64,000 nucleotides of DNA from Octopus bimaculoides (taxonomy: Eukaryota). The notes beneath the pieces were generated by a model. It worked only from the letters and a program-made list of their open reading frames with translations, had not been told where the DNA came from and made no database searches. Below, in pieces: positions 1,842-14,344 of this stretch. Position 1 is the first letter of the stretch; the number at the start of each line of letters is the position of its first letter. The DNA lies in assembly GCF_001194135.2 (NCBI RefSeq), contig NC_069010.1:9838301-9902300 (forward strand), written 5' to 3'. The position numbers and the translations under genes were made by a program.

Positions 1842-4800
1842 TCACTTTACATCTGCTGATAGAGATTTGAGTGCATCAACACACTCAGCTTCCTTGAGAG
1901 CATCTTCAAGTGTTTTCAATGTTCGTTTCTCTAGGTCACAACTTTTAAACCATTTGTGCAACACCACGTAGCCTTGTTTCACATTGTCTTTAGAATTATC
2001 GTGAATTTCCAGTTCGGAGGTTTTAACTCCTAAGAAAATCCCTGCAAAAGATACAAAAAAAAAAGAAGAAATAATTATAACATGATATAAAAGATGTGTC
2101 CTGTAAGTTGTTCTAACAAAGAAACTCCACCAAGAGAGAAATTTTGAAAATAGTTAAAAAACATGGAAAATGTAGGACATTGTTCTCTGTTTGTAAAAAT
2201 GCTGATTAAAAACGTAACAAAGACATTGGAAAAGAAGATTAAAATGGAGAAAAAATTTTTTAAAAGTATTGAAAATTACATTTGAGAGAATTTCTGGTAA
2301 AGAGATGGCAGGAGAAATGGTTATGTAGGTGACAGCATACGAGAACCTAAAGAATCAATTAACACCATCCAAAGAGTCACATTAGGGGAATCCTCTCTTT
2401 TTGCCCTGGGGAGAATATGATATGATTGAGCAGTGAGACCTCTATTAAGCCTCTTTTTATTGAAGCATCTACATATGTGTGGTTGGACATCTTCCAATAT
2501 GTTGATATAAATAGGATCATTTATTGACTTCTTATACAATAATGCTTTCAATCATTTCAAAAAGAACCTAACTTGAAGTCTTTAACAGGAATAAAGAAAA
2601 CTTATTCTGGTTGTTAACAAATATTTCCTTCATTACAATAATTTAGCAACAGACTTACTTAAAATGTAAAACAAATAAAAACATTGTCCATTAATTAAAT
2701 TCAAATTAAGACAAACGTAAATATACAAACAAAGTTTGCTTTTAGAAGCGTTGAGATGTCTTTAGAAAGTTAAATGATTTTTTAAAATTCTCAATCGCAG
2801 AATAATGTTAATAATATAGCCTGAACAGGATAAACTACCCCTATTTTGTAGAGAAAAGTGTAGGTGGCTAGCTGTGGACACGAACTCACTCACCTGTTTA
2901 CTCTTAAACAACGAATTTTAGTTTCCAGCTCCATAAGACAATATTAACTCTATCGCGTCTTCTAATTTAGCCATTATTACCAACCTCGGTGCTAACCTTG
3001 GTGGACAATTTTTTGAAATTCCAGTAATATCAATCTCTTTAATATCTTCAGAGTTAACCTTTCAATTGGAAATTAGGAATGGAACTGGTTCTCAGCCATT
3101 TTGATAAACAAAATAGCTCAAGTGAAAGTAAACTTTATAAAAAGCAATTAGGTGTTGTCATTTTATACTCACCCACTTGCCACCAGTTACTCCCTAACTT
3201 CTTGGCCACTTTCAATAGATCCTTCTCCTTCAACTTTGGACTCTCTGAAATAAATATATTCAAATTTTGAAATTTGTAAAATTTCTTATATCTCTGTTGA
3301 TAATCTATATTTTATTATCATGCGGTATTCCTTTTATCAATGGTCCCCCCATGGCTTGGATCAACATTTTTATACTTTCTACAGTGGTACCACAACAACA
3401 TAAACCTAAGCCTTTTCTCTTTAGTAAGACATTCTACATAATCCTTACAATGTAAGTGGATGTCGTGATAGATATACCATCAAAAAGAAAAGACACATGG
3501 AACACTTTTGATTCATAAATCTGCCAGATCATGACAGCCTTGGGTCAACACAACAACAATGAAGTCAACGAGACAAACAGACAGACATCATGAAATAGTA
3601 TTCTTACCGATTCTACTTTTTCTAGTTATGTGTTTCTGACATTCAGGACATGTTTTGATACCGCATTCCTCACATATCACCACGTGTCCACATGACTGGC
3701 ATTTCAGTGTGGATGCTTTAACTTCACAAAACAGACATCTGTGGAACAAGATACAAATAATCTCATCACTAGCTTTCATCAATAACATTCATCATCATTT
3801 AACATCTGTTATCTATGCTGGTATGGGTTGGACGGTTTGACTGGGCTGGCACACTGGAAGGCTGCCCCAGGCTCTAGTTTGATTCACTTATTACAAATAT
3901 TACAGTAGTGAATATTTACGAGACACGGTAGATACCAGTAAGACTACATCACAAATGTGATGTAGTCTTACTGGTATATCTGAAGAAGTCATTGATCTAC
4001 AAACATTTTCTCATAACTTGTCCACGTGGTGGTGACTGATTGGCACAGAGAAGAGAGAGAATAAAAATGTTGGAAGACAGATAAATTCTACTGATTTCGA
4101 AATAACAATGCCAAAATATGTTCATTCCCTTCATTATTTAGTACTACAGTTTCCTATCGGTCATATATCTTTAAAAGAGGCAACTGAGAGACGTAGGTGG
4201 GGGGTGAGGTATATCTGTCAACAAAACCAGTCACGTGAATATAATCAAAATGGATGCTCCTCTTTGTTTCATCCCCTTTCAACTGCATTTTCTATTTTTT
4301 GTTCTTCTTACTTGCTCAAGACACTAGTAACAGTATAATGTATTGGTAGAATTAAAACTAAACAAGCATATAAACATGATTATGTACAAAATGGAAAATT
4401 CACTGGTTTGTTTTTTTGTCTTTGCCAGGGAATACTTACAATGATGGGAAATTGGATTTTAATTTTTCTTTCAAATCTGGGTTCTCAACGAGGTCCAATG
4501 GGTTAGCATTATTGTGATTTCTATGGTAAAAGTTGGCTCCCTGCAGAGCTAGATAAGTAGCTATTACTGCACCGGAGAGCCTGGCATTCTTTCCCAATTC
4601 AAGCATAGCACAGCACTACAAACAATGAATGTATAAAAGGGTGATTGCAGTATTACACAAATATATACATTATAAGCAAAAATCATGGCATCAAATCAAA
4701 TATAGGAAATATAAAGGAACAAATATCCCAATAATAAAACACAAAACACAACAAACCAACAAGAACTTATCTATACATGGGGCTCGATAAAGCCAACTGG

Positions 4801-11526: not shown

Positions 11527-14344
11527 ATGGGTATGTTATCTTTTGTTTTTTTTTCCTTTTTTTTCAAGCAACTTTTCCTCAACTTTGATCCAAATCTGAG
11601 ATTACTAATAAAATATCTAGATAAATTTTGGTGTTTAACAATCAAAATATTCTTTTCTCTGGTGGTTTCTAAGTCAATTCCCCCCCCACACACACACACT
11701 AATGTCTATTTTGATCATTTTAAGTTTTCAAAAATTAAGAGAGATCAAATGAGTCATAACTAATTGCAATAATTTCTGCTCTTTAACTTCATGCTGTCTA
11801 AATATAACAAGGAAGAAAGCCTGTAAATTGTAAAGAAACTATTTAAAATCATTTTATGTGGTGGAGTTGTTTTGGCACTCAGTTGAGTTTCACTAATTTT
11901 ATATCATGTCTAATTTTTCAGTGACCTCAATTTGACCTAGATTTTTTAAAATTTTGTTGCATTTCTGATATCTAAGGTTGGGTGTCAATGTATGAGTTGT
12001 TGTTTTTTTTATATGTAATTCTGGAGAAAGGAAGAAGATTTATTTTGTCATGGCCTACTCAGTTTACCCCAGATTAAATTTCTCTTTTATATGCTCAAAG
12101 TGAAAGGAAATGAATCTTTTTGAAATAATACTTTTAATGCATTTAGAGAAGGTCATTTGCTTACCTGATATAGTCTTCATAAGGTAGGGAACATTTGTAA
12201 AGAAAACATATATATTTTTTTCTCCAAGTCAAAAATGCAGTAAAATTTTATTCAGTCTGTGTATCTCTCTCTATAAATTTATGAAACAAGGAGAGCTTAA
12301 ATAAATATGTTTTAATCCAAATCATAACAATTGTATCATTGCATTTAGTTTGTTGTTATATAAATATATATATATCATCATCATCATCATCGTTTAATGC
12401 TGGCATGGGTTGGATAGGTTGACTGAGGACTGGCAAGCCAGAAGGCTGCACCAGGTTCCAATCTGATCTGGCTAAGTTTCTACAGCTGGATGCCCTTCCT
12501 AATGGCAACCGTGCCTGTATGGTAAGAAGTTTGCTTCCCAAGTGATGGGCTACATATGTATGTATGTATGCATGCATGTATGCTTGGTCTGCAGTGTTTG
12601 CAGTCGTGTATGCTTGTTGAGAGCAGGGCTCACTAGCCACCAACGGAGCTGCAAATGCAAAATATAAGTTAGTCCTAGAGCGCAGAATGTTTCTGAAGGT
12701 CGGCAATGGTCTTCCTCGGTCACGAGTGGACGGCCATCATCATCATGTATGCATGCACGCATGTATGTATGTATGTATGTATATATGTATGCATGTATGT
12801 ATGTGCTACCGTTTATAGTTCTGATAGGAATGTCTTGTAATAATAAAATATAGATTTTTAGAAGTAAAGAAATGTCACAACAAATTGCAAAAACTTGTAA
12901 ATATTTATTTCAGAGAGTCCAAAGCTTGAAGAACAGTGCCCCCTACAGGACAGCAAAGAAATCAAAGAGAAAATGGCGCAAGTTGGTAAGTATAAAATAA
13001 TAGCAGCTGGTTGTTTTTTTTTATTCTTCTATTCTTTTATTTATTTCAGGTATTTGACTGTGGCCATGATGGAGCATCACCTTCAGTCGAACAAATCGAC
13101 CCCAGGATGTATTCTTTGTAAACCTGGTACTTATTCTATCGGTCTCTTTTGCCAAACCGCTAAGTCATGGGGACGTTAACACACCAACATCTGTTGTCAA
13201 GTGATGGTTGGGGAACAAACAAAGACATACAAATATATATATACATATACATATATATATATATATATATATATATATATATATATATATATATATATGT
13301 GTGTGTGTGTGTGTGTGTGTGTGTGTGTGTGTGTGTGTGTGTGTGTGTGTATAGCTTATATTTGTATGTGTCTGAATGTGTGTGTTTGTCCCTCCACCAC
13401 CATTCTTCGACAACCAATGTTGGTGTGTTTGTATCCCCATAACTTAGCTGTACGCAAAAGTGACTGATAGAATAAGCACCTGGCTTACAGGGAATAAGTC
13501 CAAGGGGCGATTTCTTCAACTAAAGGGTGGTGCTCCGGCATGGCCACTGTCAAATGACGGAGACAAGTAAAAGAGTAAAAGAATACCAGAAGAGCATTCT
13601 GTACCCCTAAACCACGAAGGTTCTTTGAATACGTACGATGTATTTTAAGGCTAAATAGTAATTCTGTTTGCGTTTACATAACTGAGATATTTTGGTTGGA
13701 TTATAATAATTACCAGTTTTACACTTCCTTCTATATTTCTGTAACCGTCACAATATGGAAGCATTTCTCATGGCACCAGCACACAATTTACAAATGCCTA
13801 CATTTTTTATGTTTCCTGTGAATTTTTCACAGGTCCAGCTTGTAGATTATTAACAGAGATAAAGAAATCTTCTTATAGATTGCAAAACCTTTGAATATTT
13901 ATTTCAGAATGTTCAAAACTGAATGAGGAGCTTCTTGAGAAAGTTTCAAAGAAGATAGGGAACAGATGGCAGCAAATAGGTGAGTATAAAGTAGCAGAAC
14001 TTAATTAGTTTCTTCAAATTTTACCTTTACCTGAGGTTTTTTTTTTTTACATTGTTTGTCAGCATGGAAAACGAATGTTAAATGATGATGGTGATGATGA
14101 TGTTACAATAATTTTTCTTATTGTTCTCTCTTTCACAGGAAGGGAATTAGAACTGAAACAAGCTCAGCTGGAAGTATTCAAAAAGGACTTTCCTAACGAC
14201 CATATAAAACACGCTCATCTGATGCTCCTCAAATGGTTTACAACATGTGATCCTGCGAAGCGCACACTCAAAACTCTCCGGGATGCTCTCGAAGATGCCG
14301 AGTGTACCGAAGCAGTCGCATGTCTACCATCAGAAGCAAAGTGA
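11527..14344 (+). CDS. Small death-domain protein, about 117 aa; start exon provisional
   Basis: join(11527..11530,12914..12985,13908..13979,14139..14344). The last three exons have clear AG/GT sites in phase 1 and read ESPKLEEQCPLQDSKEIKEKMAQV-ECSKLNEELLEKVSKKIGNRWQQIG-RELELKQAQLEVFKKDFPNDHIKHAHLMLLKWFTTCDPAKRTLKTLRDALEDAECTEAVACLPSEAK*, with the death-domain pattern G-x-x-W-x-x-L/I-G...ML-x-x-W...L-x-x-AL. The ATGG|gtatgt start at 11527 is inferred; further exons could be hidden in gaps 9205-10009 and 10711-11171. Candidate AATAAA at 14549. Confidence 0.8.

Follow-up and report, generated by a model that had tools for sequence, protein, structure and literature searches.

Domain-only death-fold proteins that act as decoys include the CARD-only COP, INCA and ICEBERG and the pyrin-only POPs. 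Mammalian MIB2 binds RIPK1 via the MZM region, and among the lysines that it ubiquitylates are some within and near the RIPK1 death domain (DD) (PMC5912950). In oysters, inhibitor of apoptosis proteins (IAPs) with BIR-DD-RING architectures are found, and IAPs are least expanded in Octopus (PMC8917759). Here we describe a 64,000-nucleotide stretch of Octopus bimaculoides DNA (NC_069010.1, positions 9,838,301 to 9,902,300, analysed in full and called the window), in which two divergently oriented genes both end in a DD: gene A, encoding ankyrin repeats, a RING finger and a DD, and gene B, encoding a DD only. We consider it probable that A and B, next to each other, belong to one expanding, octopod-specific family, and that B is a DD-only truncation kept by selection and not copied from A.

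Gene A, on the minus strand, has eight exons with canonical AG/GT borders throughout (Table 1) and an open reading frame (ORF) of 1173 nt (390 amino acids plus stop). Its protein is a 100% match to the annotated O. bimaculoides XP_014782788.1 / A0A0L8GA88, and the O. sinensis orthologue, of 393 amino acids, is 83% identical; a look-up of the O. sinensis locus gave no record of exactly this protein (P0002). Pfam recognizes four to five ankyrin repeats (E about 1e-30) and the DD (Death, PF00531, 23.8 bits for a curated cut-off of 22.6). All eight zinc ligands of the RING (residues 258-290) can be read off the sequence with cross-brace spacing, and the corresponding profile PF13920 is present in most paralogues. 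The C6-C7 loop of this RING (CEECGIKTCPEC) has 4 residues only, against 7 in the O. sinensis and O. vulgaris orthologues and about 8 in several paralogues. The first exon is present as one copy in the window and as two tandem copies in O. vulgaris (locus L004, 7518-7664 and 7805-7894), which correspond to the O. sinensis isoforms X1 and X2 (MEVDKNISK... and MEFDENISK...).

Gene B, on the plus strand, is annotated in two forms, one of 96 amino acids (A0A0L8GAK9, ATG at 12973) and one of 117 amino acids (RefSeq XP_052834122.1, coding sequence from 11527). The longer form was rejected: the ATG at 11527 reads ACA in O. vulgaris, and an 8-nt indel in exon X, 5' of the internal ATG, breaks the upstream frame in that species, so that only the 96-amino-acid frame is conserved and is taken as the product, exon X being mainly 5' untranslated region (UTR). 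This ORF is almost wholly death domain (PF00531, 38.9 bits, same cut-off), that is, the interaction domain alone, and the O. vulgaris orthologue, also of 96 amino acids, is 85% identical to it. The first-pass annotation of this DNA had warned that large additional domains of B might be hidden in the sequence gaps. With gene A as tblastn query, the window as a whole yielded no further ankyrin or RING exon on either strand, and the intergenic DNA of O. vulgaris, which is free of gaps and covers the gap regions, yielded no ankyrin or RING exon of B and no other family-type exon; hidden ankyrin or RING exons of B were rejected on this ground.

The constraint acting on B was estimated from the comparison between O. 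bimaculoides and O. vulgaris. The context of the ATG is the same in both species (A at -3, G at +4), and the three splice junctions and the position of the stop codon are conserved. Over the whole ORF, 16 synonymous and 18 non-synonymous changes give a ratio of non-synonymous to synonymous substitution rates (dN/dS) of 0.25 (binomial test against neutrality, p = 6e-4), with 0.21 for the DD exons; the values for gene A are 0.34 for the whole ORF and 0.24 for the DD. The region of the B 5' exon (about 11400-11530) shows ~91-95% identity to O. vulgaris for a non-coding background of ~84%, compatible with a first exon or promoter that is conserved. The AlphaFold2 model made for B with a 15-sequence family alignment is all helical, with a mean predicted local distance difference test score (pLDDT) of 80.7, and a Foldseek comparison with solved DDs gives template modelling (TM) scores of 0.74-0.80 to ankyrin-G, RAIDD, RIPK1, FADD and TRADD; the model predicts that B adopts the six-helix death fold. 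Among solved DDs, the nearest in sequence profile are those of RIPK1 (E = 7e-11), ankyrin-3 (9e-9) and PIDD (5e-7). Taken at the level of sequence comparison, these data show that B is a real, conserved DD-only ORF under purifying selection, probably kept so since before the split of O. bimaculoides and O. vulgaris. It could be argued that B is a dead fragment left by a partial duplication, merely predicted as an ORF and without function as a protein, since it is short and without ankyrin repeats and RING, its start differs between the annotations, the protein searches made found no B protein of O. sinensis, and truncated family copies are common, one of them (O. vulgaris L002, below) decaying with a stop codon in a DD exon. 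A dN/dS significantly below 1, the conserved ATG context, splice sites and stop position, a 5' exon conserved above background and a confidently predicted fold make this very improbable.

Both genes are closed by the same cassette, as the first-pass annotation had reported: a phase 1-1 exon of 72 nt and, after it, a terminal exon of ~200 nt. At the borders of both 72-nt exons, which were checked, the donor reads G/GTGAGTATAAA and the acceptor ...ATATTTATTTCAG/, in accordance with its reading (the slash marking the splice point), and each exon is preceded by the upstream intron motif TAGATTATYAACAGAGATA. Its hand count of 42 identical residues of 92 is close to the DD identity of 46% measured between A and B over ~91 aligned residues, and the block KWF..CD..KRTLKTL.DAL..AEC is recovered in this alignment. 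Comparison of the window with itself gives four collinear inverted matches between A and B at 70-73% DNA identity (E 1e-18 to 1e-27), far beyond chance, which span the intron flank, the exons and about 300 nt of the 3'UTR. Since introns and flanks are shared by both cassettes, the copying took place at the DNA level and not by retroposition, as had been proposed. Two elements come in addition to that account, the conserved 5' exon ending at 11530 and exon X (12914-12985), a third copy of the 72-nt exon, whose flanks have the same acceptor and donor context as the DD exons. An additional 72-nt exon of similar kind (SLNLEENRSHSTSKK...QQQV) stands directly before the DD in the paralogues P0003, P0004 and P0130.

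An unlinked paralogue of O. vulgaris has these acceptor and donor flanks and this upstream motif around its DD exon, and also around a series of linker-exon units spaced by ~2 kb. Furthermore, the exon 7 region of gene A and its terminal exon with 3'UTR have longer matches to this paralogue than to B. The homology of the intron flanks, on which the first-pass annotation had relied, and that of the 3'UTR are by these alignments family-wide and common to every exon unit, and the unit that duplicates throughout the family is an exon with its flanks. In an O. vulgaris paralogue, such exon-plus-flank units recur every ~2.1-2.7 kb at L002 72600-86400, with 78-nt linker exons such as GPKCEDRCV..ELGAASQAI, and because of these serial units the family has many 'isoforms' with variable numbers of 17-26-amino-acid linker repeats.

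On the basis of the shared cassette it had been proposed that a local inverted duplication between these two genes produced B, the pair forming a dedicated and co-regulated module of an E3 ligase and its decoy or substrate in cell-death or immune signalling. The head-to-head order kept in O. bimaculoides and O. vulgaris, the purifying selection on both ORFs, the DNA homology reaching into introns and 3'UTR, and the fact that mammalian domain-only paralogues beside multi-domain relatives (CARD-only and pyrin-only proteins) are known decoys are all consistent with it. The relationships within the family are not. The DD of A is 59-60% identical to those of five other paralogues and 46% identical to that of B, and the DD of B is 39-52% identical to those of full-length members and 54-55% identical to the unlinked DD-only proteins P0128 (O. 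sinensis) and P0130 (O. bimaculoides); with 46% between them and 52-60% to others, A and B are not closest paralogues. A two-residue deletion is common to gene A, P0014, P0016 and P0017, and A has a GIFLGV motif in common with this subgroup, whereas B is without the deletion and carries GRELELKQ and DFPND as in another subgroup. A neighbour-joining tree of 25 DDs unites A with P0014, P0016, P0017 and P0133, to the exclusion of B, with 80% bootstrap, B being placed elsewhere. These comparisons indicate that A and B are distant paralogues of different subclades and that B was not copied from A. There are many unlinked and more similar DD copies genome-wide, a situation that the first-pass annotation itself had named as making the adjacency incidental, and many further DD-only members elsewhere in the genome. 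As the intron homology is family-wide and the 5' ends of the two genes are separated by repeats and by a distance of ~4 kb in the window, or ~9.3 kb in O. vulgaris, we regard a local duplication yielding a dedicated module as rather unlikely. The system is also not of an unrecognised kind, as had been supposed, for it belongs to a large octopod family automatically annotated 'MIB2-like', both genes being already in RefSeq and UniProt.

The window (chromosome CM046630.1) is low-GC DNA with many microsatellites and repeats resembling short interspersed nuclear elements (SINEs) and holds 14 N gaps, two of which lie between the 5' ends of A and B, outside all exons and introns of both coding models. 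Gaps placed exactly between the genes raise the question of a scaffolding artefact in which unrelated contigs were joined, and the O. vulgaris locus L002 (OX597843.1, 15.7 Mb) seemed to point the same way: it matches the 3' half of A, lies 2.3 Mb from the B orthologue (L001) on the same strand, and first resembled the A orthologue. L002 (9690-19180, ~15.75 Mb) is only a partial secondary copy of this half, with the end of exon 5, the RING, the DD and the 3' flank and without exons 1 to 5a; its start is a SINE-like junction within exon 5, its first DD exon is interrupted by a stop codon, and it is a recent duplicate in decay. The true orthologue of A, at L004, adjoins L001 with an overlap of ~1.6 kb and no N. 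L004 is collinear with the window over 439-8531 and then 10011-10484, L001 continues from 11319 to about 19500, and the distance spanning gap 1 is in keeping with this, at 1480 bp for the window and 1713 bp for O. vulgaris. The anchor at 10011-10484 is CT-rich low-complexity sequence and modest evidence alone, yet its position and orientation are collinear. Both a scaffold misjoin and a 2.3-Mb inversion were rejected, and an adjacency created by the assembly can hardly be credited. The CT-rich microsatellite block between the gaps (~550 bp, 10150-10700) has a 73%-identical collinear counterpart in O. vulgaris (L004 1538-2027), the O. sinensis RING-DD protein P0123 (152 amino acids) has the same start as the L002 copy, and the O. 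vulgaris model P0046 splices the L002 copy to a paralogue 70 kb off.

The head-to-head synteny that the first-pass annotation had suggested looking for is thus kept in O. vulgaris, at L001/L004 and also in the protein accessions: the 90%-identity cluster of the O. sinensis A orthologue contains O. vulgaris CAI9744513 and CAI9744514, numbered directly after the B orthologue CAI9744512. From the ATG of A (7539) to the 5' exon of B (~11400-11530), the distance is ~4 kb (>= 3.9 kb) in the window, where gap sizes are estimated, and ~9.3 kb in O. vulgaris. Judged from these ATG and 5' exon positions, the divergent starts are not within the distance of about 1 kb usual for a bidirectional promoter, and their spacing argues against a shared compact promoter of this type.

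The family to which both genes belong comprises dozens of Ank-RING(-Death) paralogues in Octopus genomes, with the automatic names 'MIB2', 'MIB2-like' and 'MIB1-like'. At least about 15 short Octopus proteins have the DD only (among them P0128, P0129, P0130, P0132, P0136, P0139, P0140) or RING and DD (among them P0123, P0131, P0133-5, P0137, P0142), and such truncated forms recur in several subclades. An exhaustive profile search gave 1529 DD proteins at E <= 1e-3, with 22 representatives at E <= 1e-30. The strong single-DD matches whose source was looked up are all from Octopus, bar one from Argonauta, and echinoderm and amphioxus matches score high through several DDs per protein; by the source of these strong matches, the family is octopod-specific. 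Literature searches for a description of an octopod Ank-RING-DD family found nothing specific, and the expansion is apparently undescribed. One O. bimaculoides protein outside this architecture, P0164 (XP_014788728.1), is adhesion G-protein-coupled receptor-like, has 1283 amino acids and ends in a family-type DD (residues 1192-1283, 101.8 bits), which suggests exon shuffling of the phase 1-1 cassette into an adhesion-receptor-like gene.

We propose that the family has grown by tandem expansion, its typical member having ankyrin repeats, one RING and a C-terminal RIPK1-like DD, both genes and exon-plus-intron-flank units being duplicated at the DNA level. Shortened copies, reduced to RING-DD or to the DD, would repeatedly arise in this way, and B would be one such truncation, made of a degenerate 72-nt unit (now 5'UTR and start codon) and the two-exon DD cassette, which gained an upstream exon of its own and was retained head to head with A since before the species split. 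The pair is, on this account, an ordinary outcome of lineage-specific family expansion. As for function, A would be a RING E3 ligase drawn into DD oligomers by its own DD, and B could enter the same homotypic assemblies without ligase activity, as a competitor or cap or, less likely, as an adaptor; by analogy with domain-only proteins, a decoy or adaptor role is plausible. The preferred partners of B would as likely be family members with more similar DDs as A, and, given the DD relationships, nothing marks A out as its partner. That the head-to-head pairing is itself functional, B being a dedicated cap or decoy of DD filaments and the family a lineage-specific, RIPK1-DD-like cell-death or innate-immune system in which a MIB-like ligase module is fused to its recruitment domain and which might offset the small Octopus IAP repertoire, seems to us decidedly doubtful.

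Several points weigh against the view of A and B as distant members of an octopod-specific family, or against parts of the function proposed for them. In the tree, the clade that holds B has 35% bootstrap and the deeper DD nodes are weak (29-52%). The family is called octopod-specific from the strong matches whose source was looked up, and could extend to squids and cuttlefish. The conserved adjacency of A and B could mirror a functional link. Finally, the RING of A scores 21.6 bits with zf-C3HC4_3, under the curated cut-off of 27; the 4-residue C6-C7 loop is the minimum for a RING and may underlie this score, and, given both, the ligase activity of A is assumed.

The present value of these data is mainly descriptive and lies in a large, apparently undescribed expansion, its growth by exon-plus-flank duplication and the recurrent truncation to RING-DD or DD-only forms. 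The remaining interest is in B, conserved and under selection, and in the fact that it has stayed paired with A. Should B indeed regulate DD assemblies, octopods would be an independent and naturally repeated experiment in making domain-only death-fold regulators, in a system where the E3 ligase bears its own DD, whereas mammalian MIB2 reaches RIPK1 indirectly.

Table 1. Coordinates in the window of the features of genes A and B, of the stretch between them and of the inverted matches (the slash marks a splice point).
Feature	Position	Strand	Details
Gene A exon 1	7456-7539	-	ATG at 7539, 28 codons; 90% identity with O. vulgaris L004 7606-7950
Gene A exon 2, ankyrin repeats	6295-6446	-	splice borders, translation, Pfam
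Gene A exon 3, ankyrin repeats	5408-5555	-	splice borders, translation, Pfam
Gene A exon 4, ankyrin repeats	5049-5258	-	splice borders, translation, Pfam
Gene A exon 5, last ankyrin repeat and linker	4440-4615	-	splice borders, translation, Pfam
Gene A exon 6, single RING finger	3608-3738	-	C-x2-C-x11-C-x-H-x3-C-x2-C-x4-C-x2-C
Gene A exon 7, first DD exon, 72 nt, phase 1-1	3173-3244	-	splice borders, translation
Gene A exon 8, terminal DD exon and stop codon	1842-2041	-	~200 nt; splice borders, translation
Gene A 3'UTR and downstream stretch	1534-1841	-	homologous to 3'UTR of B and of other family members
Intergenic stretch	9205-11171	.	N gaps 9205-10009 and 10711-11171, CT-rich microsatellite block 10010-10710
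Gene B 5' exon	11400-11530, start undefined	+	ends ATGG/GTATGT; ATG at 11527 used by the 117-amino-acid RefSeq model
Gene B exon X, degenerate third copy of the 72-nt exon unit	12914-12985	+	mostly 5'UTR; conserved start codon at 12973
Gene B exon Y, first DD exon, 72 nt, phase 1-1	13908-13979	+	splice borders, translation
Gene B exon Z, terminal DD exon, 206 nt including stop	14139-14344	+	splice borders, translation
Gene B 3'UTR	14345-14670	+	homologous to gene A 3'UTR
A-B inverted match	1534-1685 <-> 14670-14521		71% identity
A-B inverted match	1772-1993 <-> 14415-14193		70% identity
A-B inverted match	3106-3307 <-> 14046-13843		73% identity

Elsewhere in the window, minus-strand exons of a UPF0489 (C5orf22-like) gene lie at 21383-21769 and 27622-27975 (PF12640, 49 bits on the latter), and O. 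vulgaris L001 has a matching UPF0489 gene of 503 amino acids downstream of B. At ~43500-44440 on the plus strand, a GC-richer exon encodes a long Ser/Thr/Pro- and Asn-rich low-complexity stretch followed by a WW domain (Pfam, 39.6 bits), which presumably could belong to a PCIF1-like gene; the ORF at 48289-48639 has no Pfam match. A prokaryote-type list of ORFs for the remainder of the window gave two incidental domain matches and told little else, the DNA being eukaryotic. Two families of SINE-like repeats (8866-9204, 13022-13270, 13357-13577, 16982-17350 and 53450-53850; also 6710-6839, 11172-11342 and 12357-12510) have many copies in the window and in all the O. vulgaris loci, and one of them forms the truncation junction of L002.

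Compared with the described systems, gene A resembles MIB1 and MIB2 in having an ankyrin block followed by a C3HC4_3-type RING, which is the source of the automatic family names, and differs from them in having one RING, where MIB proteins have two or three, and a C-terminal DD that is absent from MIB. No MIB/HERC2, ZZ or Mib-repeat match was found for A in Pfam (E <= 1), so that the MZM region of Mind bomb was not recovered, and A has only 28-32% identity to the Octopus proteins with true Mib repeats (PF18346). Judged from these domain matches, the octopod proteins are MIB-like in their Ank-RING half only, with a RIPK1-like DD instead of MZM and Mib repeats. The DDs of RIPK1, ankyrin-G and PIDD are the best profile matches of the octopus DD among solved structures and good fold matches (TM as above), with an identity of about 20% and without any kinase, ZU5-UPA or LRR context on the octopus side. 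The CARD-only and pyrin-only decoys are, like B, single death-fold domains of about 90-100 amino acids that arose by partial gene duplication and stand beside a multi-domain relative. In contrast to them, B is a DD proper, neither CARD nor PYD, and its neighbour has closer paralogues than B: a decoy of COP or POP type would be expected to descend from the multi-domain gene beside it and to resemble that gene most, and this was not found for B. The oyster IAPs share with the family of A a molluscan lineage-specific expansion of RING E3 regulators of cell death with a death-fold domain, and differ in having BIR where A has ankyrin repeats, and in placing the DD before the RING, not after it (PMC8917759). 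The fusion of a RING ligase with a death-fold domain has therefore a molluscan precedent in the oyster IAPs (PMC8917759).

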